DNA of 64,000 nucleotides. Source: Pocillopora damicornis (Eukaryota). The notes beneath the pieces were generated by a model. That model saw only the letters and a program-made list of their open reading frames with translations. It did no database searches and was not told the DNA's origin. The first letter of the stretch is position 1. Each line of letters starts with the position of its first letter. Of this stretch, positions 1,705-54,128 are shown one piece after another. The stretch lies in NCBI RefSeq assembly GCF_003704095.1, contig NW_020845316.1, forward strand, positions 248,001 through 312,000. The letters are read 5' to 3'. The translations under genes were made by a program, and so were the position numbers.

Positions 1705-3313
1705 TTAATTAACAATTAAAGTAAACCTTTTTAACTTTTTCCCGTCATGTTTGCCCCTTTCTATTGCAAACAGGTACTCTGTGAAATACAGAACTACCAT
1801 TATCGTGCAAACTACGTTGGAAATGACGTGGTATCGCCACTGTTTNNNNNNNNNNNNNNNNNNNNNNNNNNNNNNNNNNNNNNNNNNNNNNNNNNNNNNN
1901 NNNNNNNNNNNNNNNNNNNNNNNNNNNNNNNNNNNNNNNNNNNNNACTACCATTATCGTGCAAACTACGTTGGAAATGACGTGGTATCGCCACTGTTTAC
2001 TCCTCCACACTTTCAACACGGCAACATTTAGGTACATCGCTTGCAGCCACAACGATACAGTGTTAAAAAATACATCTATTGCTAGACCAGTAACGCAACG
2101 AGCCAAGAATTGCCAGATGAGACTCTCAAAGTAACCATCAGGCGTTTGGAAGTCATCTAAGTACATGCAATTGTACAACCGACTGAATCCTACTGCTGAC
2201 ACTAGGGCGTTGGCTTCGGTTAGGACAAGTTGAATGCTAACGTCTGCAACAAAACGCATACTTCGAGGGGTGCGGGTTATGCCTGCTGGAAAATCTCTTG
2301 GGCGTGATCTGCAGCAGCGAGAGAGTAGTTTGTAGGCGTATTCCCAGATGTAATCCCTCATGGAAACTGTTAAGCGCTCTATGAGGTCAACCACAGCATG
2401 ACCAGCGCCCAAAGCGACAAATAACCAAAAGCTTACCAACTCTGCCTGCATAACACGGAAGACAAGAGCTGCTGCAGTATATAAAGTACCTATCAAGAGG
2501 TGCAAAACTCCAGGGTGAACTAGGTTGAACTTTGTTACGGCTGTGCGAAGAATCACTTTCGGGATCGATAGAAATAACGGGCTTAAACCTGCGATGAACA
2601 CTTTCTCAATCTCCGATTTTTCGTTATACCATGGGAAGATCTTGTAGACGAGTAAGAAACAAATAGGTATACCAAATATAAACTGCAAGGCTAGAAGACC
2701 TGTAATCTTAGATAGGGTCTTCTTGGAGTACAGATGCTCGGGTATAATATGCTTAGCTATGATCACGCTATTCGTCATCACCATTGATGCAAACAAAACA
2801 TTTAGGGGAAAACTCATCCACGAGTGTTTGTAGATACCAAATATTTGTAGATACAGGCGATAGCAACAGTCGGTAAAAGCAGCAAGGAGATTAACCGTGA
2901 AAAGGTTAAGCTCTTTCATAAATGAAAAACCAAATATACATAACATTNNNNNNNNNNNNNNNNNNNNNNNNNNNNNNNNNNNNNNNNNNNNNNNNNNNNN
3001 NNNNNNNNNNNNNNNNNNNNNNNNNNNNNNNNNNNNNNNNNNNNNNNCCGTGAAAAGGTTAAGCTCTTTCATAAATGAAAAACCAAATATACATAACATT
3101 ACGGAAAAATGCCAAAGCTGAATGAGGAACCCTTCTATCGACTGGCTAGTGACACGGATGCTCTGAATCACTCGTGGCATGCTGTACCATTGAGCTGTCC
3201 TCTCAGCAAAGCAAAGATCTGCGGTGTTGAAATCTAACACTGCGATGGCAATCGCCAGAAAACCGATGGAAGAGCCAAACACAAACTGCATTTTAAAGAC
3301 CGTCTTAAAACAA
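1705..3313 (-). CDS. Uncharacterised intronless multi-pass membrane protein (start lies in or beyond the gap at 3314-3616)
   Basis: Long ORF with about 10 hydrophobic segments. The two 100-N gaps are flanked by duplicated 53-bp sequences, so the true frame is probably contiguous. Confidence 0.75.
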
Positions 3314-3919
3314 NNNNNNNNNNNNNNNNNNNNNNNNNNNNNNNNNNNNNNNNNNNNNNNNNNNNNNNNNNNNNNNNNNNNNNNNNNNNNNNNNNNNNNN
3401 NNNNNNNNNNNNNNNNNNNNNNNNNNNNNNNNNNNNNNNNNNNNNNNNNNNNNNNNNNNNNNNNNNNNNNNNNNNNNNNNNNNNNNNNNNNNNNNNNNNN
3501 NNNNNNNNNNNNNNNNNNNNNNNNNNNNNNNNNNNNNNNNNNNNNNNNNNNNNNNNNNNNNNNNNNNNNNNNNNNNNNNNNNNNNNNNNNNNNNNNNNNN
3601 NNNNNNNNNNNNNNNNTTCAGTTTCTGCACAGTCGGTTTGGTAGTGCCAAATTCTGCACATTACTAATCCGTTGTGATTGTTTTCCAGTTAAACAATCCG
3701 AAATTGAATTGAATCCGTTTCCGGGAATTCGGGGAACGTAATGTGATACACGAGTAACGACATGAAAGTGAAAACGAAGGGATTCTAACGGATTTAAGCT
3801 AAGAAAACATCAAACCCTCTCTCTTATTTGAAGGATGAAACTATAGGTTTATTAAGGGGGTAAATTACATGGCGTTGAGAAATCAAATTCTTGTTATACA
3901 GGTAACGTTAAGACTGCAC

Positions 3920-4460: not shown

Positions 4461-5253
4461 TATCTATAGTTCCCTGGTTTGTGAATCATTACAAGAGAAG
4501 AGTTTTTTATATATATAGATATTTCGTCAATCACTGTCAATATTACGAACTATAAATACCTCCAATATTACAATAAAGTTCATTGTGCTTAAAACAATCA
4601 TGTTGCAGACCAGGTCAAAAAGGATACCAAGAAAACCACCAACTAATCAACGCTGCTGCTCAAAGACCAGTTTTCTTTCCTATCTATTTTCATTTCCAGA
4701 ATTATTTATGGTTTTCACAGTTTTTCAAAATCTGACAGAAACCAATACTAATATTTTTTTCCTGTTGTATACTGTAAAAATAATTTGGATGACAATTAAA
4801 AGCAAAGCAACAGAGAAGATTTTCCTTACAAAATGACATTACTTTCAGAATAAAAATACATTTTAAATTAAACATTCAAAAATAAATTTACTATGCTTAA
4901 TTTCTGCCAATTTAAAGTGCTGCTGGAGTCAACACTTAATAGCCTACTGGCTAAGCATAATTTATTATGTGGTTAGTAAATCCCTTTGATCCCTAGGGGT
5001 AACTAGCATCTAATGTCTAATTACAATATCTTGCTTGAATCACACATCGAGGTCACAAAAATAAAGGAAATGATCACCAACAAAAGAAGCTTGTTTGTTA
5101 AACAAATTCTCCTTGTCAGCATCACAACAAGAAGAAAGTGCTGCTAAAAATGAACACTGTTTTGCACATGTTATCATTTCAAGTCTGTTTGAAAACTAAT
5201 TTTCAGATCACAAGCACAACTTCAACCAACATTCTGGCTTTGACAATTATGTT

Positions 5254-8200
5254 TTAAGACTGCTCACAGCAGCATCTCTGTATTCTGAACCACCAGAAGG
5301 TCCACAGTTTGCGGGACTGCTTGTTAAATGCCAAGAAACACACAGTCGTCAGTGCAAAGAATGCAGTACTTAGGGATGATACCACAAATGCGTCAGAGAA
5401 AGTGTACTTTTCATATTCTGTTGGGAACAAAATTTGTAGATCAATGTCAGTCAACTGATAACAAGTTAGGAGTAATTAAATTTTGGACTAAGGGAAGGGT
5501 AGGAATGCAGTTGCTCAGTTAATGACATTCATCAAATTTACTTTCATCAATAACCTTACCCAAAGAATTTCATTTATGTTTTTAGTGTGTAGATCCAGTA
5601 TGCAGGTGAAAAAAAAAATAAATGTGAGTCTGTCTTATTGTTCACTTTTGATAGACTGGATAAAATTATAGAGCTCATAGTGTAGTTGTTACATACATGT
5701 ATTACTGAACAAATACCAAGTAAATGATACTCAAAGCACTTGATACTAACTTTTATGACACTTCTCTGGTGGGTAAAACATCAAGCAACGAAAGTACCGA
5801 TTTATATGGTGTTCCAGAAGGGCTGCATGTTGTTGTAAAAGGCAGATGGGAATATAAGTGAGAGTTACAATGGCTGCATATGCAAACATAAGAAACACCA
5901 GGCGCTGAACCAGTTTGTCCATTTTCTTTTTTCTTGATTTAGCTTGCTCACCAGCAACAGGGGAGATGTTGCGTAGCTGAAATGACCAAGAAGAAGGAGG
6001 TCACGATTAGCTAGCAGACATTTACTATCCATTTCCCAGCTGTGTGACAATTGAAATCTAATTTTATCAGATACAGGTAATTTAGTGTTAACAACTGGGT
6101 TGAAAACGTAAATTAGCCACCGTGAAGAGAAAAAAAGCTGACTTTTCGAGCGTTAGCCCTTCGTCAAAAAGATAGCTCTGACGAAGGGCTAACGCTCGAA
6201 ACGTCAGCTTTTTTACTCTTCATGGTGGCTAATTTACGTTTTCAACCCAGTCGTTAACACTAAATTACCTGCNNNNNNNNNNCACCGACGCAGCATCACA
6301 GTTTCTTTAGAAACTTACCCCTTTATTCATTTATCAGAAACAGATTTCTACCAGGACTAGACTTCCATTTACAATTAATTCTCTTGTGTTGTGTAAGGTG
6401 TTCACCAGGCCGTGGATGTAGAAGAATTCTACAATTATTAAGCAGAATTCCTCCACTAAATTTCAATGCCAAGAAACACACAGTCGTGGACTTTGGAGTA
6501 ACTTTAAGTTAAAAATGTAATGATTTACAATGTAAACCTCGTTAAAAATTATCTTCTAGCTGTGTAAATGGGCCTTCTAATAATGGCATTGAATAAAAAA
6601 CAACCATTAATTGCTCACCTACTAAAAACATTTGAACTGTTAGTTAAAAGTAAATAATTATTACCATGAAAAGTTTATAGACCACAAAAAACAAGCAGGT
6701 AACACCAACACCCAGTGCCAGCTCTGTGATAAATGTAGTTGTAAAATATCCAGTGTCTGTTGATCCAGGGAAGCAGAATTGCATATTTACAACAATATAA
6801 GGTGGTGATTCAGAGCCAAGTACAATGCCAACAGGAATGAAAGGAAGAAGCCAGCAAATTAAGGAATACACAATATGCTGTACTCTGTAATGATTTCCCT
6901 GGAGGTTTACCAGACTGTCAGAATAGATCATCTGAAAGAAAGTAGTAATATATTAACTCTTTGAATTCTAGAGGTGATGTGTGTAAGATGATGCCCATGG
7001 TGGTGTGTCTTTGTGTAGAGGTGCAGATATTATGGATGGATCCCTGAGAGGAGGGTGTTCTATGGCTGTAAGATTGTATATATAACCCTTGACAGAGGAC
7101 AGAGACTTCAATTTGTCTTGCAATTCCTGCTGCAGAAGCCATAACAAACCGGTTTAGGGACAGAGATACACCTAACCAGAGACAACTACAATGATCAAAT
7201 GAACAAAATGAAGTGATCAAATGCCAACTAAATGTCAGTCAACAGCTAGCCAGGAGCAGTATGTAGGCCTGAGGCTAATTAATTTATTCCCCTTGCTGCC
7301 CTTGGAATATGAACAATATGATATTGCTATAGTGTAACTACCTCAATCTCAACATCCCAACAGTTGGTTTCTTCCACCAACACAGATAAGTTGCCTTTCA
7401 GGGTCCAGTTGTTCAAAGGACAGATACTGCTATCTGTCCTTTAAATTGCTAAGTGTAAGCAAAAGATACTATGCTATCCACCAATAGAGATTTATCCAAT
7501 CCACCCTTCAAACAACCCAGGCCAGTATCATAGACATATTAATCCTTTCCCGCTTGAGATTGCCACATGGCACAAGATGCCATTGCATGCTCAATATTCA
7601 TTCATTTTTTCTGAAACTTTCAAAACCAAAAGGTCATTGAAAGATCTGCACATTGAAGGCATAAAATCATGGCTCCCTCTAATACAAGACTTGGTTTACC
7701 ACCCCTGCAACTTTTGGAACTTTTTGTCTTAGTACTGTTTTGGTTCAGGTGATATCTCACCACAATCAATGCTCTGAGAGCTGCAATTTAAACCATAGCT
7801 AAGTGGTATACCCTATATGTACGAGGCAAACAAACAATTTCAAGGTTTTTTATTTTTCACTTTGGACACTTCTCAGTCTTTTCAGTTACCTCCTCCAAAC
7901 CTGTTGGTGTCCTTTATAGCATACCCCCAAAAAATACCTATAAAATTATATATTATGCATGGTCTAGTGCTTCATTGGTCTCATTTCAAAAAAAATTTGG
8001 CATTTCCCTCAGGCAGGAAAGGGATAGACTGAAGAATGTTCACATTTGTAATCACTCTCAATAGTGATAAACAAACATATTTACAGATCATAACATTACA
8101 TGAAGATAGTGAATAAATCCCAGATAAAAACAGGATAAAAATTTGATTTGATAAAGATTTTAAGATTTTGAGACCTTAGTGCTGCTTCAATCACTAGAAG

Positions 8201-11200
8201 AATGAAAGATTTCAGAACATTGGTGACACTTCTTGTGAATTGACCAGTTGAAAGCTCTTGCTTTATCTGACATTAGTAGACAAATAAATAAGCTTTTAGG
8301 CTTGGCTTTTACAGTGGTTTCAAATGATCTTATACAACACTTACTTCAGTGCACACAAAATTTTGGATATTTTCCAAAATTGTCAAAAATAGTGGTTGTG
8401 AGCTAGCCATTATTCTTGCATTACTACATTAGAATCATCAATCAAAAACACATCACTTGATGAATCAAGAATAACTCCTGTAAAAGCTAATTTAGAAACA
8501 CTTTAATAAAACATCTAAGGTAAAATACTAACCTGGATAGAAAAAAATGTGCTGTGCATATCACATAAGCATCAACAAAATGTCTTGCATCTCACTCACC
8601 TTAAGTAAATTGACGCTATAAACCACAAACCACAGTGCCAAAGCTACACAAAAGTAGTGTATCAGGACCCCTTGAGCAGTACAAAATGTAGTGGGATTTT
8701 TTGAAGATTCTGCTAAAAACTTGCTGCTACAGAAAGCCTTCTCTTCTCCTATTCCATTGGCTACCACAATAAGAACAGCTTAAAATAAACAAAAACATTA
8801 TTCATTACAATACTGTTTTTGACCGAATAAGTACCTTGTCTTGAATAACAACCTCCTTCCTGCTAACCTTACCTTTAAACCAAGCCCCTTTCAATAAATG
8901 ACCACTGCTACTGGTTCCTTGATATGTTTATTACTAGTAACACATCCCCATTTAAATATGTACTTCACCATTTTGATGTGTACATATACAAATATTTTTA
9001 AATTAAGGTTTGCCTGTTTTATTTNNNNNNNNNNCAAATAAAACAGACAACAATAGATGGGAAATTTCTGCTTTAAGAGCAGCAATGTTTCACCATAAAT
9101 TGGATGCTATCTGTTGTAATTTTGCAGCAAAAATATCAGTTGCATGCAATGTATTTCATCTTAAAAATATATTGAATACTCTGTGGTTAACACAGCAATG
9201 GAAACGTACCCAATTGCTTACAATTCTACAGAAATCGCTGACAGAAATCATTGACTGAAATTGCCACACCGTTTTCACTCTTTATCAGTGCCCGAAAGTG
9301 ATCAAATGACCATTATCTTTTGTAAAGACTGTCAATTCATCTCTGGTGAACGTGCAAATAATCATGTCCATGTGATGAAAAAGTAAAAAAATTTCGCAAC
9401 CTTTTTATGCTCGTAAATGTTCTGATGACATTATAGTAGTTGTGACACCGTAACGCTTATTAGAAGGCAAGTAAGGACTTGACCAGTGGACGCATGAGAA
9501 ACTTATCACCTTCCTTTTCCTTTTCCATTTTGTTACAGGCAATGATTGCGTCACAATTTTGAGTTTTGCACAAGATGTATGCTAACTTGAAGCAAATCAT
9601 GCTACTGAAACCCAACTAATTACTTCTGTATTTACGGGGAGAATTTATCAAATTTTAGGATAATTTGTTTAATTCTGTGAGTACAGAATATGTTAAGTTA
9701 CCAGTTCATCTGCCAGTCAGAGATTGAAATTTAGAAAGAAATGAAAGTAAGTTTTTTCCTTGAAATTCTGAGTTCAGAAACTCACTTAGCGAATGTGTCA
9801 GTGTAAAGTTGAATGTGCACTTGACAAATACACGCTAACAATTTATCCATGCTTTGAGAAAAAGCACCAACAAAGTTACAGGAAGGGAGAGAATACAGTC
9901 ATTATTGGTGGCTCTCTTATCATTACAGAACACTTAAATTATTGAGTTAAACAAAAGGAAACAGTAAACAATAAACAAAAAGGCTATGATGTACTGGTAA
10001 CTAACCAGTTATGATTAAAGTTGTTTCACAGAGTTATAAACATATTGTTAACATGTTTGAGTGTTAAACGGTTAAGAATATATGAAAGTCACATATTTGA
10101 ACTGCAGATAAAGATGTGAATGAAAGTGATCCTTGCAGTGATGTGCACTACTTGGGCAGTAGTGAAAATAAGGCCTAAAAAAATTCAGGCCTGTACGGGA
10201 TTTGATGTTGGTTCCAAATAAACCCAAGAAGTGATGAATAAACGGTTAAGAATATAAGAAAGTCATATATTTGAACTGCGGATAAAGACGTGAATGAAAG
10301 NNNNNNNNNNAGTGATGTGCACTACTTAGGCAGTAGTGAAAATAAGGCCTGAACCCATGACCAGCTCCCAGTTGGCTTGTTAGCTCAGTTGGTAGAGCGC
10401 TGNNNNNNNNNNGCAGAGGTCATGGGTTCAAATCCTGTACAGACCTGAATTTTTTTCAGGCCTTATTTTCACTACTTCCCAAGTAGTGCACATCACTGTG
10501 AGGATCACTTTCATTCATGTTTGAGTGTTCTTATTTATTGGTAAATAGATTATTGCTGTTTGTTCTTTTTAACCCTTTCAATGTCAAGGTCTCATTGAAA
10601 ATTCTCCTTGCTGTCTGTCAGACAATTCGTATGCTATTACTATTGATAATTTTTATTCTCATCACTCGTCTGAGTGTTTTACATTGTACAGATATTGTAA
10701 TGAGAAATTCTGCCTCAGTCACTTACAGGAGTTTAAGGTTAGTCAATTGAAATAAAATGAAAGTACTTAAGGTTGATCAAAATAAACTTACCAATGGCTG
10801 ATGATAGGCCTTGAATGTAAAGAGGAATTATATGCGGAAAACATCTCCTGACAATATAGCAAAGAAAACAGTTCTGTCAAACATGGCATTTCTCAATAAT
10901 TGTACTCCTGTGAATACAGTATTGTGAACAGCAAGAGGTAATAGTTTGTTGGTATTGCAAGTATCCAGAGCTAGTCTTGTATTTTCATTCATTTGTTTAT
11001 TTTCATCAAACCTTTCTAATGAATTTTTGGGTGTTATTTATTACATTTATATCTCTGAATCCAAAAGAATATTGTTCAATTAAAATGTAATTTAAGAATT
11101 ACAGAGAGTTATGACCAATAGGTCACTATAAAGGAAAAAAACATTGCAGAGAAAGAAAATTACAATTAAAGTTATACTATTAAATAAACATGATACAATT

Positions 11201-13176
11201 CTGCACAAAAAAAAGGAGAGGGCAACAGCATTGACATTAAACTCACAGTTTCTTAATCCGCATCCAAGTTGACAATATTATGACAAAACCCAACAAATTA
11301 ACAGCAATAGAAAAGCTTTCAACGACTAGCAAGGCAAATTTTTCTGCTTTTGTCAGCATCACCCATGGGCATGGTGGTTCACACAAATGTGTTTTCTGGT
11401 TCAAAATGAGTGGATGACTGCAAGGGTACAGAGGCTGAGTTTGATTACTACAGGAAAGAAAAAAGTGACAAGGTTATCTCAGTGATATGAAAATGTGCAC
11501 CTACCTTACCTCAAATCTAAATCTGTTTTTACAAACTTTGTGAATGGTTGATTGATCTAAAATTGAATTGTTTTCCTGTATACTAGCTATGAAATCCTCT
11601 AGCAGAGAAAGCACCCTGATGACAGCTTTCACTTTCCTATGTTGGAGCTTGGTCACAATTCCTTGACCAAGTATCACATGCAGGCTGAGTTTGATGTTTC
11701 ATTCTTGTCACCCTGTCAACTCTTTACACCCTAACATCAGTATGTACATTTTACATTCTTTCTCTAAACATTTCTTAAGGTGCTGACGAGGAAAATTTGT
11801 TTAACAATCAAGAACTTATTGCATTGATGACCATTTTTCATTATTCTCATAACTTTTATGTATGAATTAGAGGTGATAATGTAAGGAGAAATTATATGCT
11901 TTCACACTTAAGGGTCAAAGTTTAAATCCTCCCTCCACAAAAACAAAGTCAGTAATACAGACACTTTCCAAGGAAACAGTGGATTTACTTACCAGTATCT
12001 TGTGGATGTGCTAGTGCTAAATTCAAACTTTTTTAATTTATGACTATCATTTCATAATTCACCTCTTTATTGTATGATGGATATTCATGATCATGGTGTT
12101 CCCCTTTAAGGTAGCCTTGTGAACATATGTTCATTTAGGGGACTACACAGCAATTAACCCAAAAGAAAACCATGAATGTATGAGCTAAGCTACCAGCAAG
12201 CTAGATTAACACTTGGTAAGATTTCTACAAAGCCCCATTCTTCAATGTGTACACAGTTCTTGCATAAAAAAAAATCATAGTAAAAATAATAGGTTGCCTT
12301 AATTGCTTCTTTGTTTTAGGGTAGTATGGAGCTGAGAGGAAATCCTATATAACACTCAGTTAACTTGCTCAGTAGAGCTTTCATCAAATTCCCTATCATC
12401 TTCATTCATCAGTCAGTTGACTGATTTCAAATTATTTGACTTGATTGAAATGAAAAATTTTTTATTTCTAGTTAACCCTTTAACTCCTAGAAGTGATTAA
12501 CATAAAACTTCTCCCTACGGTATATTCTTCAGCAAACAGGTAATGAGAAGATTCAAACTTATCAGGTAGAAGCTGCTATCTTGATCTGGCACCAAGTTCT
12601 CATANNNNNNNNNNNNNNNNNNNTGTAGCAGCTAGAGGGGAGAATTAACAATCAGATCTTGGGAGTTACAGGGTTAAGTTATAAGATTGACTGACTGCAT
12701 CAAAATCCTTAAAGAGTATTTCTTTATATACTAAAAAATCCATCCTATTCTAAAACAAAGCTGTATTCCCAAAGGTATCCTACTGTTTTGTCACTGTCAT
12801 CCTATACTGAATGCATGCATTATGAATAATTGGGCTGCGCGGAAATCTCCATAAATGCTATACCACTCAGAAAATTTGGAGTCAAAAATCAAAATCAAAT
12901 CTCTATCAGTTCCCACATTAGACATAAGACCAGAAAATTATCAGCAAAATCTCACCTGATGTTCGGTGAAGGTGGATCCGTAGGAACTGGGAGTTTGTTT
13001 GCGTAGAATACGGTGGGAAGCAATGAAACGCCCCATATCAAAAGCAAACAAGGGATTACAACCAAAACCACACGAAAACAACTTCTCTCTTTGAGCACAA
13101 GAGGTTTCTGATCACCAGAGGATGAAAGCGATGTATCTGTCATGTCCTGTTCGTGGACATTTACTAGGCTAGACAT
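5254..13176 (-). CDS. Frizzled/Smoothened-like (class F) 7TM receptor without CRD, with an extra N-terminal TM helix; 437 aa (445 aa with the optional microexon)
   Basis: Exons 13176-12956, [12016-11993], 11447-11247, 10847-10792, 8778-8600, 6931-6665, 5976-5751, 5417-5254, all GT-AG and phase-consistent. Class F motifs: CSHPL..CEPPCPW linker, RCFPHIIPLY, FCTAQG..YFCVALALWFVV, HIVYSLICWLLP, QFCFPG, KMDKLVQRL, YFRC..EKC, NKQSRKLWTFWW. Confidence 0.85.
6076..6330. mobile_element. Penelope-like palindromic remnant carrying a minimal hammerhead ribozyme (intronic)
   Basis: About 90-bp inverted arms around paired hammerhead motifs, followed by the CACCGACGCAGCATCACAGTTTCTTTAGAAACTTACCCC tail. Confidence 0.75.
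6174..6209 (+). ncRNA. Minimal type I hammerhead ribozyme motif
   Basis: AGCU (stem I) - CUGACGA - A - GGGC/UAAC/GCUC (stem II) - GAAA - CG - UC - AGCU (stem I). Palindromic ACGU stem III; predicted cleavage after C6205. Confidence 0.65.
10066..10518. mobile_element. tRNA-derived repeat with long inverted arms and an internal tandem duplication
   Basis: A/B-box-like core TAGCTCAGTTGGTAGAGC...GGGTTCAAATCC (10381-10435). Arm 10114-10205 is the reverse complement of 10428-10518. Confidence 0.7.
12472..12677. mobile_element. TTAA-flanked MITE (piggyBac-like ends)
   Basis: TTAA-CCCTTTAACTCC...GGGAGTTACAGGG-TTAA. Homologous to 22640-22838, with more decayed relatives near 4980, 10570, 11720, 29080, 29505 and 58190. 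Confidence 0.7.
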
Positions 13177-13977
13177 TCTGCCTGCACAAAGTCGAAAACA
13201 ATTCCAAAGCGATCTATTCTTGAATGAAATGTAATCTGTCGATAATAAAATAAGATGAAAACTGAAACACCTTATATCTTTTGAATATATTCGATCAAAG
13301 CGAGCTTACAAGGGAGAAGCTTGAGCTTCACAGAGAAGCCAGGTGGACTTTAACTCCTGTAATTTGCATCAATTGAGAAGCACAAAGACCACTTTGTACG
13401 CCTTCTCGATGAGTGTTTTCTTGGTAATGTAACATGATCTACCAGGCCTTTTGACCTTTCCAAATGAAGAATCCCCCAAACATTAATACCACAGAAAATC
13501 TGGCATATCACAGAAAACTTAATTTCAGTTTCACATACCTCTGATTAGTCTTGGTAAAATTTCCGCACAGCCCCATATTTCATTATGCATTCAATTCTTG
13601 AATAGAGAAAACAAGGACTAAANNNNNNNNNNGCCATTGGGAAAACAGATTTGTTTTACACTAGTATGGGGCTGTGCGGAAATTTTACCTTAGTCTCAAG
13701 TACGTCCTAAATCGAAGGATAAACTTAAAGAAGTTACTTAGATTTCTGAGAATTCTGCACCAGTGTGCACCATAACCACTTGGTCAACTTCCGTTGATAA
13801 GCGGGAAACTGGAAAGCAAGAATTGGTGATATTTCGTTCAACATAAATGAAGAGAATTTCAAAAAGTTCTTTGGCGCATTATTTGAACGAAGCGAAGTCA
13901 GAAGCAAACACGCTCCAGGAAACGAAAGATATTACTGAGATTTTGAGTTTTCCAGTGGCACCACAAGTCTCAGAAAT
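13177..13977. promoter_or_regulatory. Divergent (bidirectional) promoter region between the class F receptor gene and MRNIP
   Basis: Head-to-head start codons about 800 bp apart. Confidence 0.55.
13553..13689. mobile_element. Merlin-like MITE
   Basis: Perfect 25-bp TIRs GGTAAAATTTCCGCACAGCCCCATA / TATGGGGCTGTGCGGAAATTTTACC, flanked by a near-identical 8-bp TSD (TTAGTCTT / TTAGTCTC). GGNRM terminus. Confidence 0.65.
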
Positions 13978-36029: not shown

Positions 36030-37430
36030 TTACTCAAGACATGAGCTGTCCCCTTCGCTATCAGTTTGATTTTCACTGCTTGAACACAAGTCGCTTCTAG
36101 ACCACTCCCCTTTTTCTAGCCTTAGCATATCAGACAAGCGGCTAATGCGCCTCTCGGCAGAATCAAGTTCCAGCTCAAACCCATGTCTCTGAATGAGCAC
36201 CTTCGCTTCTTCAGCCTTCTCGATAGCCATAGCATTGTTTTGTTCAAAACAGTACTGATCAGACCGCAAAAGCAGCAGTTTTATTCTTGTCCCTAACGCC
36301 ATTTTACCATCAGCAGTTCTAGATTCAGTTAAATCAAGGTGCCTTTTTGCTTTCATAACGTCTTCTTTGCAGATGTGGGTGTTGTTGTTCGCTGCCTTAG
36401 AGCAGGACTTTAGGAGCAGAGCCGCCATTTTGACGTTAATGTATTCTCGGTTGATTACAGCGTACTGACATGCCAGCTCATAAGATTTGTACGCTGTAGT
36501 TTTTCGGGTGTCCCGAGTTATATTCGCTGCAGGTAAAGAGTTAAGCAGTGCGCCATAACTTTGATAGAGTTCCGCTTTGTCTTCATGGGAATCCTGAAGT
36601 TCAAGAGCTTTTTGTGCCTCTTGCACGCATCTCATAGCGTTTCCAAATTTGCTCTGACGCTTGTACACCGCCGTCAAAAGATTCAAGGCTCGTCCGATCA
36701 GAATTCCCGGGTTTTTCAACTGCGGCTCCAGTTTCAGTACAAATTTTAGTATTCTTTTGGCATCTTTACCATTGTTCTGAAAAAAAAGGGCCATTGCGCG
36801 TTCAATCTTTAAACTCACTTCCATGTCAACATCTTCGGGCGACCTTCTTGCCAACTGTTCTCGTATTATTTGCTCATGTAGCTCAAACTCCCCTTTATCT
36901 TGTAGATAGTGTAGTTTTGTTATAAGTAAGATATAACCGGAAGTATTCATACATCCGCGCTTTGGAATGACTGGCATTGGAGAATGGACAGAGCTAGGTT
37001 TGCCTAATATTGAGTAGACTTGTGTTCCTTGTCTGTCTTCTTCTATCTCTTGAGTTTTTGTGACTGAATCGCTTTCTTCATCAGATGAAGTGGGCAGATT
37101 CTTGCTATCACATTTACAAGTCGGTACTTGACACGGTGTGCTGTTAGAACCATTCTGGATTATGGAAAAACCTGAAACCTTGATACGTAGAACTTTCTGG
37201 GATTGTCTTATCTCTTGATCCTGATCTGTTTCTATTGCTGCACCTTTCCTATGATGTGATTCACGTTTTCCATGAACGATTCCTCCCTCCAAGAGAGGGT
37301 GGATCTTCCTGTCATAAGAAAGAGAACAAACCGGATCTCCATTCTGAACTTCATGAGTGAAATCTTCAGGAATATCCTCGTCTAATTCTGTGAGAAAAAC
37401 TCCACAGGAAACGCTTTTCTGAGTGGTCAT
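36030..37430 (-). CDS. Uncharacterised helical-repeat (TPR-like) protein, copy 1, 466 aa
   Basis: Single-exon ORF with an acidic, disordered N-terminus, then TPR-like helices (GRALNLLTAVYKRQSKFGNAMRCVQEAQKAL; KAELYQSYGALL). In-frame stop upstream of the ATG and a 5'UTR acceptor at about 37560. Confidence 0.85.
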   Translation of the reverse strand: MTTQKSVSCGVFLTELDEDIPEDFTHEVQNGDPVCSLSYDRKIHPLLEGGIVHGKRESHHRKGAAIETDQDQEIRQSQKVLRIKVSGFSIIQNGSNSTPCQVPTCKCDSKNLPTSSDEESDSVTKTQEIEEDRQGTQVYSILGKPSSVHSPMPVIPKRGCMNTSGYILLITKLHYLQDKGEFELHEQIIREQLARRSPEDVDMEVSLKIERAMALFFQNNGKDAKRILKFVLKLEPQLKNPGILIGRALNLLTAVYKRQSKFGNAMRCVQEAQKALELQDSHEDKAELYQSYGALLNSLPAANITRDTRKTTAYKSYELACQYAVINREYINVKMAALLLKSCSKAANNNTHICKEDVMKAKRHLDLTESRTADGKMALGTRIKLLLLRSDQYCFEQNNAMAIEKAEEAKVLIQRHGFELELDSAERRISRLSDMLRLEKGEWSRSDLCSSSENQTDSEGDSSCLE

Positions 37431-52766: not shown

Positions 52767-54128
52767 TTACTCAAGAGATGAGCTGTCCCCTTCTCTATCA
52801 GTTTGATCTTCACTGCTTGAACACGATTCACTGCTGAGCCATTCCCCTTTTTCTAGCCCTTGCATATCAGACAAGCGCCTAATGCGCTTCTCGGCAGAAT
52901 CAAGTTCCAGCTCAAACCTATGTGCGAGGATGAGCCCCATCGCTTCTTCAGCCTTCTCGACAGCCATAGCAATGTTTTGTTCAAAGTAGTGCTGATCAGA
53001 TCGCAAAAGAAGATACTTTATTCTTGTCCCTAATCCCATGTTACCATCAGCCGTTCTAGATTCAGTTAAATCAAGGTGCCTTTTTGCTTTCATAACGTCC
53101 TCTTTGCAGATGTCGGTGTCGTTGTTCGCTACCTCGAAGCAGGGCTTTAGGAGCAGATCTGCCATTTTGGTGTTGATGTATCCATTGTTGTTTACAGAGT
53201 ACTGACATGCCCGCTGATAAGACTTGTACGCTTCAGTTTTTCGGGTGTCCCGAGCACTGTTCGGTGCAGGTAAAGAGTCAAGCAGTGCGCCACGAGTGTA
53301 ACACAGTTCTCCTTTATCGTCGTGAGAATCCTGAAGTTCAAGAGCTTTTTGTGCCTTTTCCACGCATCGCATAGCATTTCCAAATTTTCTCTGACGCTTG
53401 TACACCGCCGTCAAAAGATTCAAGGCTCGTCCCGTCAGAATTCCCGGGTTTTTCATCTCCAGTTCCCGTTTAAGTACAGATTTTAGTATTGTTTTGGTAC
53501 CTTTAAGATTATTCTGGAAATAAAAGGCCTTTGCGCGCTCAATCTCTAAAATTGCTTTCATGTCAACATCTTCAGGCGACCTTCTTGCCAACTCTTCTTG
53601 TATTATTCGTTCATGTGCCTCAAACGTCCCGTTATCTTGTAGATCGTGTAGCTTTGTCATGAGTGAGATATAACGGGAATTATTCATACATCCGCGCTTT
53701 GGAATGACTGGCATTGGAGAATGGACAGAGCTGAGTTGAACCAATATTAAGTCGACTTGGATGCCTTGACTGTCTTCTTCTATGTCCAGGGGTTTTATGA
53801 CTGAGTCGTTTTCTTCATCAGAAGAAGTGAGACAACTCTTGTTACGACATTTACAAGTCTGCACATGACACAGTGTGTTGTTAGAACCATTCTGGATTAT
53901 GGGAAAACCTGAAGCCTTAATAGATAGAACACTCTGGGATCGTCTCATCTCTTGATCCTGATCTGTTGCTTTTGCTGCATGTTTCCTATGATGTGACTTA
54001 AATTTCCCATGGACAATTCCTCCAGTAACTGGTTCTCGAGTCTGAACTTCATCGGTGTAAGCTTCAGGAACATCCTCGACTAATTCTACAAGAAAAACTT
54101 CACAGGAAAGACTATCCTGAGTAGTCAT
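52767..54128 (-). CDS. TPR-like protein copy 3, 453 aa
   Basis: Intact paralog of 36030-37430 with a 13-codon in-frame deletion near the N-terminus. Confidence 0.85.
   Translation of the reverse strand: MTTQDSLSCEVFLVELVEDVPEAYTDEVQTREPVTGGIVHGKFKSHHRKHAAKATDQDQEMRRSQSVLSIKASGFPIIQNGSNNTLCHVQTCKCRNKSCLTSSDEENDSVIKPLDIEEDSQGIQVDLILVQLSSVHSPMPVIPKRGCMNNSRYISLMTKLHDLQDNGTFEAHERIIQEELARRSPEDVDMKAILEIERAKAFYFQNNLKGTKTILKSVLKRELEMKNPGILTGRALNLLTAVYKRQRKFGNAMRCVEKAQKALELQDSHDDKGELCYTRGALLDSLPAPNSARDTRKTEAYKSYQRACQYSVNNNGYINTKMADLLLKPCFEVANNDTDICKEDVMKAKRHLDLTESRTADGNMGLGTRIKYLLLRSDQHYFEQNIAMAVEKAEEAMGLILAHRFELELDSAEKRIRRLSDMQGLEKGEWLSSESCSSSEDQTDREGDSSSLE

Follow-up and report, generated by a model that had tools for sequence, protein, structure and literature searches.

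In the textbook view, animal class F receptors comprise the CRD-bearing Frizzleds (FZD) and Smoothened (SMO), and models of how Wnt and sterols are sensed give the CRD a central part. On the minus strand of the window, by which we mean the whole 64 kb stretch of Pocillopora damicornis DNA analysed here, lies a gene whose predicted product (437 aa, eight hydrophobic segments and 19 Cys) was initially annotated as a class F receptor lacking the CRD and having an extra N-terminal hydrophobic segment, here called TM0. The locus raises the question of whether an animal class F receptor can do without its CRD, and of what becomes of the additional segment. Our overall explanation, a divergent CRD-less class F receptor with the disulfides, ligand mode, TM0 arrangement and output proposed below, is given a probability of roughly 0.6 as a whole; the identity alone, an expressed CRD-less receptor of class F type, is highly probable.

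A transcribed gene of seven coding exons

The coding sequence runs from 13176 to 5254 with an intact frame, and all seven coding exons have GT donors, AG acceptors and compatible phases (Table 1). The joints 12956/11447, 11247/10847 and 10792/8778 were present in RNA contigs from four runs belonging to four studies (polyA RNA), and a full-length transcript contig, L001, consisted of exon 0 (13420-13310) and exactly the seven coding exons, with 97.3-100% identity to the window. The phase-consistent exon chain of the initial annotation was thereby recovered from transcripts. The transcript-derived protein of the gene, P0023, differed at 8 of the 437 residues. The five N gaps in the window (6273-6282, 9025-9034, 10301-10310, 10403-10412 and 12605-12623) are all intronic and, given the RNA and L001 joints, no exon is therefore concealed in a gap in the transcripts seen.

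Table 1. Features of the receptor gene, in positions of the window.
Feature	Position	Strand	Content	Support
Exon 0	13310..13420 (at least to 13420)	-	5' UTR	L001 positions 1-111 map at 100% identity
Exon 1	12956..13235 (acceptor at 13235; CDS from ATG 13176)	-	N-tail (aa 1-31), TM0, Pro-rich stalk with NIS/NQT sequons; phase 2 donor	Joint 12956/11447 in four RNA runs and L001
TM0 coding segment	13003..13077	-	aa 34-58	Hydropathy peak 2.63
Exon 2	11247..11447	-	Linker domain (C83, C96, C100), TM1, ICL1	RNA joints and L001
Exon 3	10792..10847 (56 nt)	-	TM2 start	RNA joints and L001
Exon 4	8600..8778	-	Remaining TM2, ECL1 (C176), TM3 (C192), ICL2	Joints in RNA
Exon 5	6665..6931	-	TM4, ECL2 (C272), TM5	L001
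Exon 6	5751..5976	-	ICL3 (basic cluster), long TM6, ECL3 (C372, C381)	L001
Exon 7	5063..5417 (CDS part 5417-5254)	-	TM7, helix 8 (K-Q-S-R-K-L-W), CCC cluster	L001
Stop codon	5254-5256	-	3' UTR reaches at least 5063	

The exon chain corrects the public Pocillopora damicornis gene model pdam_00007319 (P0032), in which exon 2 is skipped and false exons are added. A faulty model of this kind would suit an annotation artefact or a decaying pseudogene, a reading which retains next to no probability and was ruled out by the RNA joints, the orthologues and the mapping of L001: the frame is intact, spliced polyA RNA came from four studies, the exon structure is conserved and orthologues of 431-449 aa occur throughout Anthozoa. 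The gene is intact, transcribed and single-copy.

No match to the Fz CRD (PF01392) was detectable anywhere in the window, so no CRD is encoded there; elsewhere in the genome there were 73 matches. Exon 1 was joined directly to exon 2 in RNA from four studies, and the untranslated exon 0 carries, besides a 13-codon uORF (13370-13329), a TAA (L001 69-71) which is in frame with the ATG at L001 171, with no intervening ATG. The lack of a CRD, as first claimed, is borne out by this splice, by the in-frame stop in the untranslated 5' exon and by the search of the window. Additional CRD exons, which could have overturned that claim, did not occur in the transcripts seen, and no CRD was found in the orthologues of 431-449 aa. 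The receptor gene encodes no CRD.

Relationship to Frizzled and Smoothened

P0023 scored 37.0 bits against the Pfam Frizzled model (PF01534; cut-off 22.3, E 2.9e-9), the match covering profile positions 7-316 of 322; exon 4 was the sole single exon to match the model (16.8 bits, E 0.004). The model was matched by 8 of the 13 family members and was the only GPCR family matched within the family at E<=0.1. An unrelated 7tm_2/cAMP-receptor-like ORF of the same genome cross-matched PF01534 at 38.7 bits, which shows that the Pfam model is not fully specific, and class F membership therefore rests on the summed evidence and not on Pfam alone. Using hhalign, the family profile was aligned to the four FZDs of the same genome at 96.5% (E 9.8e-10) over 350 columns, which take in the linker, TM6, TM7 and helix 8. 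When solved structures were searched with the profile, 13 SMO chains were found near E 1e-5, and below E 0.05 there was no receptor other than SMO.

The confident AF2 model (pLDDT 81.3, pTM 0.79) was built from an alignment including FZDs, and Foldseek ranks 1-34 obtained with it were all SMO or FZD. VIA-align gave Z 27.1-24 for SMO (rmsd 3.0-3.3 Å over 320-348 residues including the linker) and Z 25-20 for FZD, with 304-350 residues aligned for SMO and FZD together, versus Z at most 20.7 and about 255 residues for other GPCRs. A model made from the family only was poor (pLDDT 55.7) and nonetheless ranked SMO first. In the ESM Atlas the nearest clusters were Frizzled (0.93), and some neighbour clusters below rank 2 had 7tm_2 or Dicty_CAR matches.

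Such neighbours, as well as the control ORF that scored 38.7 bits on PF01534 and 85.9% against the family profile, would fit a GPCR of a different family, either adhesion/secretin-like (7tm_2) or cAMP-receptor-like, that merely cross-matched the Frizzled model. This reading is very improbable, as no family member matched PF00002 (7tm_2) or PF05462 (Dicty_CAR) at E<=0.1, the match to FZDs spans 350 columns versus 148 for the control, SMO stood alone among the solved structures, adhesion receptors fell short of SMO and FZD by 4-6 Z units with about 70 fewer residues aligned, and the linker CxxxC and the cysteines of ECL1 and ECL3 are typical of class F. The placement in class B2 or the cAMP-receptor-like family, raised at the outset as the outcome that would count against class F, did not occur, and the class F 7TM core of the initial annotation was upheld by Pfam, by the genome's own FZDs and by the closest structures and folds.

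The motifs first noticed, CSHPL..CEPPC, AFC, TFC, QFC and FRC..EKC plus the exon-1 helix, are present, and the eight extracellular Cys (83, 96, 100, 176, 192, 272, 372 and 381) are invariant or nearly so in the 13 family members. Six of the eight align column for column with SMO, the first linker Cys being offset by about 6 residues in that alignment, and in the FZD alignment the same six are matched together with the ECL3 pair; the linker CxxxC is aligned to the linker CxxxC of both. The class F switch pairs a basic residue at the TM6 base with a Trp at the TM7 end. In the FZD alignment, at 17% identity, the TM6 base has an R aligned to the FZD R in most hexacoral members and Q or G in octocorals and the coral member P0027, and a Phe is aligned to the Trp that precedes helix 8.

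The family was uncovered by an exhaustive protein search with exon 5 as query. Members occur in Scleractinia, Actiniaria and Octocorallia; all named members are anthozoan and annotated as uncharacterized, the Nematostella orthologue has the same seven-exon structure, and a search of a literature library turned up no paper on the family. This CRD-less class F lineage has so far been found only in Anthozoa, where it has persisted, conserved and expressed, since the octocoral-hexacoral split. It shows that animals too, and not Dictyostelium alone, can keep the class F helix bundle and linker in the absence of a CRD, here over hundreds of millions of years. The dictyostelid Fsc proteins combine a 7TM region of class F type with a short N-terminus and lack a CRD (PMC10445921). 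Compared by description, they share the architecture type of the anthozoan receptor but are amoebozoan and derive from repeated CRD loss within dictyostelids, whereas the anthozoan receptors form a lineage of their own within animals. The receptor would provide a natural minimal class F receptor for studying sensing and coupling by the 7TM/linker module, and Nematostella, which is genetically tractable, has it.

The N-terminal hydrophobic segment

TM0 is proposed to insert N-in/C-out and would probably be kept as an eighth helix that packs against the bundle, with the Ser-rich N-tail in the cytosol. This 8-TM topology, which the initial annotation had put forward, is plausible but weakly supported, because the segment may instead be a cleaved signal peptide. 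In its favour, K/R residues are more numerous before the helix than after it, and conserved N-x-S sequons lie downstream. The C-terminal half of TM0, W-G-V-S-L-L-P-T-V-F-Y, is conserved across Anthozoa, TM0 conservation among hexacorals being 52%.

The alternative is that the receptor is the same CRD-less class F protein, but that its first segment is removed as a signal peptide, one whose n-region is unusually long in hexacorals, so that the mature protein is 7-TM and its ectodomain of about 50 residues starts at the conserved hydrophobic L-L-P-T-(I/V)-F-Y. We regard this as a serious though clearly less probable reading. All canonical class F receptors have cleaved signal peptides, and octocoral members begin with M-K-x followed by the helix, with just 3-4 residues ahead of it as in an ordinary signal peptide. 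A small-x-small motif in the middle of TM0 (GVS, GVA, AVA or VVC) is conserved and may be a signal-peptidase site, in which case the would-be -3/-1 positions are conserved as small residues and the best-conserved part of the segment comes after them. Retention, on the other hand, is favoured by the uncharged segment (25-26 residues, the hydrophobic run being put at 25-30), a length on the high side for signal peptides, and by the N-tail of 30-45 residues, whose motif D-x-S-L-S-S-S-G is shared by stony corals and sea anemones, which would be unexpected for a discarded n-region. The AF2 model likewise has TM0 as a single continuous helix of 30 residues (pLDDT 84-89), lying outside the part aligned to SMO/FZD. 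In a complex test of the N-terminal piece against the core, the score was 0.48 versus 0.01 for the best control, with runs agreeing in at least 75% of contacts and a partner pLDDT of at least 56, which gives weak support for packing on the core. Of 78 solved complexes 51 reached the mark of this test, as did 2 of 108 mismatched pairs; yet only 5 of the 78 solved complexes, and all 4 mismatches that passed, did so with a score of at most 0.60.

If cleavage did take place, an improbable further reading is that the conserved hydrophobic N-terminus L-L-P-T-I-F-Y acts as a tethered agonist, by analogy with adhesion GPCRs. For a retained segment the closest likeness is found in the CRF2(a) receptor, a GPCR of a different class with a pseudo signal peptide: its N-terminal hydrophobic segment is uncleaved and stays in the mature receptor, but is not known to form a packed eighth transmembrane helix.

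Proposed mode of action and comparison with known receptors

The eight Cys would form four class F disulfides (linker-linker, linker-ECL1, TM3-ECL2 and within ECL3), and the outer face is pictured as a compact glycosylated linker/loop cap above the helix bundle. Since there is no CRD, CRD-based capture of a Wnt lipid or sterol is excluded, and a ligand, if any, would have to act at the linker/loop cap or in the 7TM cavity, similar to small molecules and sterols at the 7TM site of SMO. Output would proceed via the short basic ICL3, helix 8 and the probably palmitoylated CCC tail to a heterotrimeric G protein or another, unspecified partner. The exact KTxxxW of Frizzled is not kept, the Lys of helix 8 being one residue too distant from the Trp, and a C-terminal PDZ ligand is absent, the protein ending in C-C-C-E-Q-S versus T-x-V or L-V in the four own FZDs; for these reasons the canonical Dishevelled/PDZ route is not proposed. 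A long tail of the SMO type is also absent, with about 25 residues following TM7.

With the CRD, KTxxxW, PDZ ligand and long SMO tail all missing, every known class F motif for ligand capture or effector binding is gone, and the contig also carries two canonical FZD genes, at distances of 27 and 50 kb. The protein might on these grounds be a modulator and not a ligand sensor, pairing with a canonical FZD or SMO as decoy or co-receptor and tuning Wnt or Hedgehog output. We find this unlikely: conservation in the intracellular loops, in helix 8 and in the basic ICL3 cluster equals that of the helices, which fits an effector-coupling surface. Even less probable is a split Frizzled, a third animal class F lineage in which TM0 and the linker cap dock a free-standing Fz-CRD protein in trans, so that ligand capture and transmembrane signalling would reside on separate polypeptides. 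Free-standing membrane-anchored Fz-CRD proteins are expanded in the genome, the 73 Fz matches being mostly outside FZD genes.

Homology of the receptor to the Frizzleds (FZD1-10 and the four cnidarian FZDs) extends through the linker, TM1-TM7 and helix 8, at about 17% identity. By alignment they have in common the P-I-I of TM2, where F-P-H-I-I-P-L-Y of exon 3 is aligned to FZD Y-P-E-R-P-I-I-F, the Cys and Trp of TM3, W..P in TM4, C-F-x-G in ECL2 and, in most hexacoral members, the basic residue at the TM6 base. The four FZDs of the same genome are intronless, unlike the coral receptor gene with its seven coding exons.

Smoothened was the best match to the anthozoan receptor both by sequence profile and by structure. 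The two share the linker domain with its CxxxC and the cysteines of ECL1, TM3, ECL2 and ECL3; in both, TM6 is long and the gene has several exons, and the Lys/Trp spacing in helix 8 of human SMO presumably resembles that of the coral receptor. They differ in that SMO has a CRD and a long phosphorylated C-tail with kinase-site clusters, both lacking in the coral receptor, and in that the coral receptor has the extra N-terminal helix. By inspection, the intron positions of the Smoothened gene in the same genome are not common to the coral receptor gene. The genome also has a canonical SMO-like locus, C173, which is distinct from the coral receptor gene and carries a CRD.

Exon chain, transcripts and absence of a CRD

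Three-frame translation and splice-site inspection identified seven coding exons on the minus strand, making up the sole gene of the region 5254-13176 (see the table). Every exon is bounded by a GT donor and by an AG acceptor that follows a pyrimidine tract; the phases are compatible (2, 2, 1, 0, 0, 1). The 437-aa product contains eight hydrophobic segments and 19 cysteines. All five assembly gaps (6273-6282, 9025-9034, 10301-10310, 10403-10412 and 12605-12623) are intronic, and the reading frame is thus uninterrupted by any gap.

Coding exons, conserved extracellular cysteines of the product, and further open frames in the window
Feature	Position	Strand	Length	Basis
Coding exon 1	13176-12956	-		splice sites, phase
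Coding exon 2	11447-11247	-		splice sites, phase
Coding exon 3	10847-10792	-		splice sites, phase
Coding exon 4	8778-8600	-		splice sites, phase
Coding exon 5	6931-6665	-		splice sites, phase
Coding exon 6	5976-5751	-		splice sites, phase
Coding exon 7	5417-5254	-		splice sites, phase
Linker cysteines	C83, C96, C100
ECL1 cysteine	C176
TM3 top cysteine	C192
ECL2 cysteine	C272
ECL3 cysteines	C372, C381
Open frame	1705-3630	-	641 aa
Open frame	36030-37430	-	466 aa
Open frame	42480-43397	-	305 aa
Open frame	52767-54128	-	453 aa

Four polyA/cDNA RNA runs, drawn from four studies, have Logan contigs that span the joints 12956/11447, 11247/10847 and 10792/8778, and at every joint the intron has GT..AG ends on the minus strand. 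These contigs lost their match to the window at 13235-13238, behind an AG acceptor, yet extended further, which revealed an upstream exon. A full-length transcript contig of the gene, L001, was reached via P0023, a transcript-derived protein in a public collection. On the window, L001 aligned as exon 0 (13420-13310) and then precisely the seven predicted exons, at 97.3-100% identity. The phase-consistent exon chain read in the initial annotation was accordingly reproduced by the splice phases, the RNA joints and L001. An in-frame TAA lies 34 codons upstream of the ATG in L001 with no ATG in between, which makes exon 0 untranslated and the ATG at 13176 the start codon. P0023 is longer by 27 residues because a bacterial-style gene caller picked a GTG start. 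Since only 8 of 437 residues differ between P0023 and the window product, P0023 probably represents an allele or a sister species. Comparing L001 with the window gave a dN/dS of 0.39, a value from only 14 differences that holds little information. A 13-codon upstream ORF is present in the 5′ UTR exon 0 (window 13329-13370, minus strand; ATG at L001 51-53) and ends ahead of the main ATG.

A candidate exon at about 8190-8272 (I-K-Q-E-L-S-T...) was rejected, as it breaks phase with the next exon and is missing from L001 and all RNA contigs. The same segment is one of the false exons, another lying around 7100-7440, of the Pocillopora damicornis public model pdam_00007319 (P0032, 396 aa). This model starts with exon 1 of the gene and includes exons 3-6, splices exon 1 straight to exon 3 so that the linker/TM1 exon 2 is skipped, and ends early; it is wrong for the minus strand of 5254-13176.

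No match to the Fz cysteine-rich domain (CRD, PF01392) was found within the 64 kb window; the transcripts seen thus neither code for a CRD nor have an exon concealed in a gap. With exon 0 untranslated and L001 adding no other exon, the lack of a CRD claimed in the initial annotation held. Elsewhere in the same coral genome (G000), at least 73 Fz-CRD matches were present, most of them as tandemly clustered short open frames (about 130-450 aa) that are not part of Frizzled genes (contigs C2698, C2139, C3447, C2762 and C2558).

Relationship to Smoothened and Frizzled

Full-length tests of family, fold and complex were run on P0023 and orthologues and the window exons were searched singly, while the joined 437-aa model was used only for translation, hydropathy and local comparison. 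Single exons were too short for Pfam and their scans were nearly blank, exon 4 alone touching the Frizzled model PF01534 (16.8 bits). A whole-genome six-frame PF01534 scan did not flag the locus at E ≤ 0.01. P0023 matched PF01534 above the cut-off with 37.0 bits (E 2.9e-9) over profile positions 7-316 of 322, and the family members P0007, P0020 and P0017 scored 33.4, 30.9 and 24.7. Among the 13 members aligned, here called the family, PF01534 was matched by eight and other GPCR families by none at E ≤ 0.1.

The family profile aligned by hhalign with the four intronless Frizzled genes (FZDs) of the same coral at 96.5% (E 9.8e-10), with 350 columns aligned, spanning linker to helix 8. Against all solved structures its only matches below E 0.05 were 13 Smoothened (SMO) sequences (E 1e-5 to 2e-4); SMO was reached by the family profile only, as a phmmer search of the solved structures with the orthologue P0007 gave no match. 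An AF2 model from the family-only alignment (13 sequences) was poor (pLDDT 55.7) and its Foldseek list only suggestive. Adding the four coral FZDs to the alignment gave a model with pLDDT 81.3 and pTM 0.79, for which Foldseek ranks 1-34 were all SMO or FZD, with SMO first (E 1e-9) and the first other GPCR at rank 35. By VIA-align, SMO structures reached Z 27.1-24 with rmsd 3.0-3.3 Å over 320-348 residues (model residues 96/105-458), FZDs Z 25-20, and adhesion and other GPCRs at most 20.7 with about 255 aligned residues. The ESM Atlas feature neighbours were Frizzled clusters (0.93).

PF01534 is incompletely specific and cross-matches other GPCR families. A 236-aa open frame in the same genome (L007 1551-2258, minus strand; G000:C203) matched 7tm_2 (56.6 bits), Dicty_CAR (44.1) and Frizzled (38.7) together, and this 7tm_2/cAMP-receptor-like frame also aligned with the family profile (85.9%, E 5e-6, 148 columns). 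The class F assignment therefore rests on several lines taken together: a long match, no 7tm_2 or Dicty_CAR matches, SMO alone among solved structures, the structural ranking, and linker and loop cysteines specific to class F. Taken with the alignment to the coral's own FZDs, these sequence and model comparisons support the class F seven-transmembrane core put forward in the initial annotation.

Eight extracellular cysteines (see the table) are invariant or nearly so in the 13 members. Those of the CxxxC motif, ECL1, TM3 and ECL2 align column for column with SMO and FZD; against SMO, the first linker cysteine is shifted by about six residues. The cysteine positions quoted earlier as equivalents of the SMO disulfides agree with this alignment and conservation, and we infer that the eight are disulfide-bonded. 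The TM2 P-I-I motif, TM3 Trp, TM4 W..P, ECL2 C-F-x-G and the Arg at the TM6 base all align with FZD. Unlike FZD, the coral protein has no CRD, no KTxxxW (its helix 8 reads K-Q-S-R-K-L-W) and no C-terminal PDZ ligand, ending instead in C-C-C-E-Q-S; unlike SMO, it lacks a long tail. The TM7 Trp before helix 8 is not kept, the aligned coral residue being Phe.

The first helix and alternative readings

The first hydrophobic segment, TM0, is an extra N-terminal helix encoded in exon 1. Hydropathy is highest over residues 34-58 (peak 2.63). Counted for its retention were the length of the uncharged stretch around it (26 residues), the excess of Lys/Arg before over after it, the conserved N-x-S sequons directly after it, which place that side in the lumen, and an acidic, Ser-rich N-tail motif common to stony corals and, more loosely, to sea anemones. 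Also counted were the AF2 helix, single and continuous over 30 residues (pLDDT 84-89) and outside the part superposable on SMO/FZD, and a complex test of P0023 residues 28-100 against the core 105-464. The latter scored 0.48 (best control 0.01), with contact agreement between runs of at least 75% and partner pLDDT of at least 56, and lent weak support; in the real protein the piece and the core form one chain, a further weakness of the test. Of 78 solved complexes, 51 attained the mark of this test, as did 2 of 108 mismatched pairs; scores of 0.60 or lower were found for only 5 of those 78 complexes and for all 4 mismatches that passed. We favour an eight-transmembrane protein that would retain TM0 with a cytosolic N-terminus (probability about 0.6).

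It is possible that the same CRD-less class F receptor instead has its first segment cleaved as a signal peptide. Counted on that side were the octocoral members, in which, as in classical signal peptides, only M-K-x stands ahead of the helix, a small-x-small motif conserved in mid-segment (GVS, GVA, AVA, VVC), and the position of the best-conserved part of TM0, L-L-P-T-I-F-Y, after this motif; on the other side stand the sequons, the charge bias and the N-tail motif. A non-signalling modulator of FZD or SMO is an unlikely reading; the missing KTxxxW and PDZ elements of FZD speak for it, and the conserved intracellular loops, helix 8 and basic ICL3 against it. Membership of another GPCR family is very improbable, the cross-matching of PF01534 being set against the structural ranking, and an artefact or pseudogene, for which the faulty public model might be cited, is hardly credible beside the spliced transcripts.

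The mechanism proposed with TM0 retained builds on an established core, a transcribed and conserved class F-type seven-transmembrane and linker protein without a CRD. Its outer face would be a disulfide-stapled, glycosylated linker/loop cap, and instead of at a CRD, a ligand would act at this cap or within the cavity of the helix bundle. The anchor helix, oriented N-in, would probably be kept, and output may pass via the basic ICL3, helix 8 and the CCC tail, which is probably palmitoylated, to a G protein or another partner, the canonical Dishevelled/PDZ route being unlikely.

Family, genomic setting and repeats

An exhaustive HMMER search with exon 5 gave 20 proteins, and word searches gave 15 with a full-length member and 17 with the family alignment. 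The named members are all anthozoan, 390-449 aa long and annotated as 'uncharacterized' or 'hypothetical', and come from Orbicella, Oculina, Desmophyllum (a fragment), Pocillopora, Nematostella, Actinia, Actinostola and the octocoral Paramuricea. Conservation among hexacorals was highest in TM2 and TM3 (71-75%), intermediate in TM0 (52%) and lowest in the N-tail (33%). In the literature searched, CRD-less Frizzled/Smoothened-like receptors are described only for Dictyostelia (PMC10445921), and recent GPCR surveys have Frizzled-family receptors carrying the Fz domain (PMC12716839). The same literature, of incomplete coverage and thus offering absence of evidence only, yielded no paper on a CRD-less class F receptor of anthozoans or other animals. 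We rate the gene as an undescribed anthozoan class F lineage.

The gene is single-copy in this genome, and a paralogue search found only a weak match to its linker/TM1 part (33% identity, E 5e-4) with one internal TAA, at G000:C1602:231021-231212 (L008 about 3022-3213). This could be a distant paralogue or a relic, and a Pfam scan of the adjoining open frames gave no hit. Besides the four intronless FZDs, the genome contains one multi-exon SMO-like locus with a CRD. The family HMM scored 24.6, 20.6, 6.7 and 6.3 bits against the FZDs and 17.1, 6.6 and 3.1 against three SMO exons, and by inspection the intron positions are not common to the gene and the SMO locus. Two of these FZDs, canonical and CRD-bearing, sit on the plus strand of the same contig at 27 and 50 kb from the gene (G000:C1951:202985-204592 and 225601-227070); no FZD was found within 10 kb of the Nematostella orthologue. 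That orthologue shares the seven-exon structure and occurs twice in tandem in its assembly (L009 10001-14428 and 17743-22166; OW051998.1), with copies near-identical at the protein level, reflecting either a recent duplication or an assembly duplication.

The further open frames of the window (see the table) had no Pfam match at E ≤ 0.001. RNA contigs over a repeat in intron 1 (12325-12718), adjoining the gap 12605-12623, sum to a depth of as much as about 78,800 and show numerous loose ends and irregular joints; the repeat is a very abundant family and no part of the gene. In intron 3 (10065-10517), a repeat around a tRNA-like core occurs in two direct copies (174 bp apart, 94-95% identical) and one inverted copy, interrupted by two N gaps. 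ARAGORN called no tRNA there, and from its RNA contig depth of hundreds to thousands the repeat is a transcribed SINE-like family. In intron 5 (6074-6271), a 93-nt inverted repeat, 96% complementary with 12 nt between the arms and adjoining the gap 6273-6282, looks like a MITE-type hairpin element.
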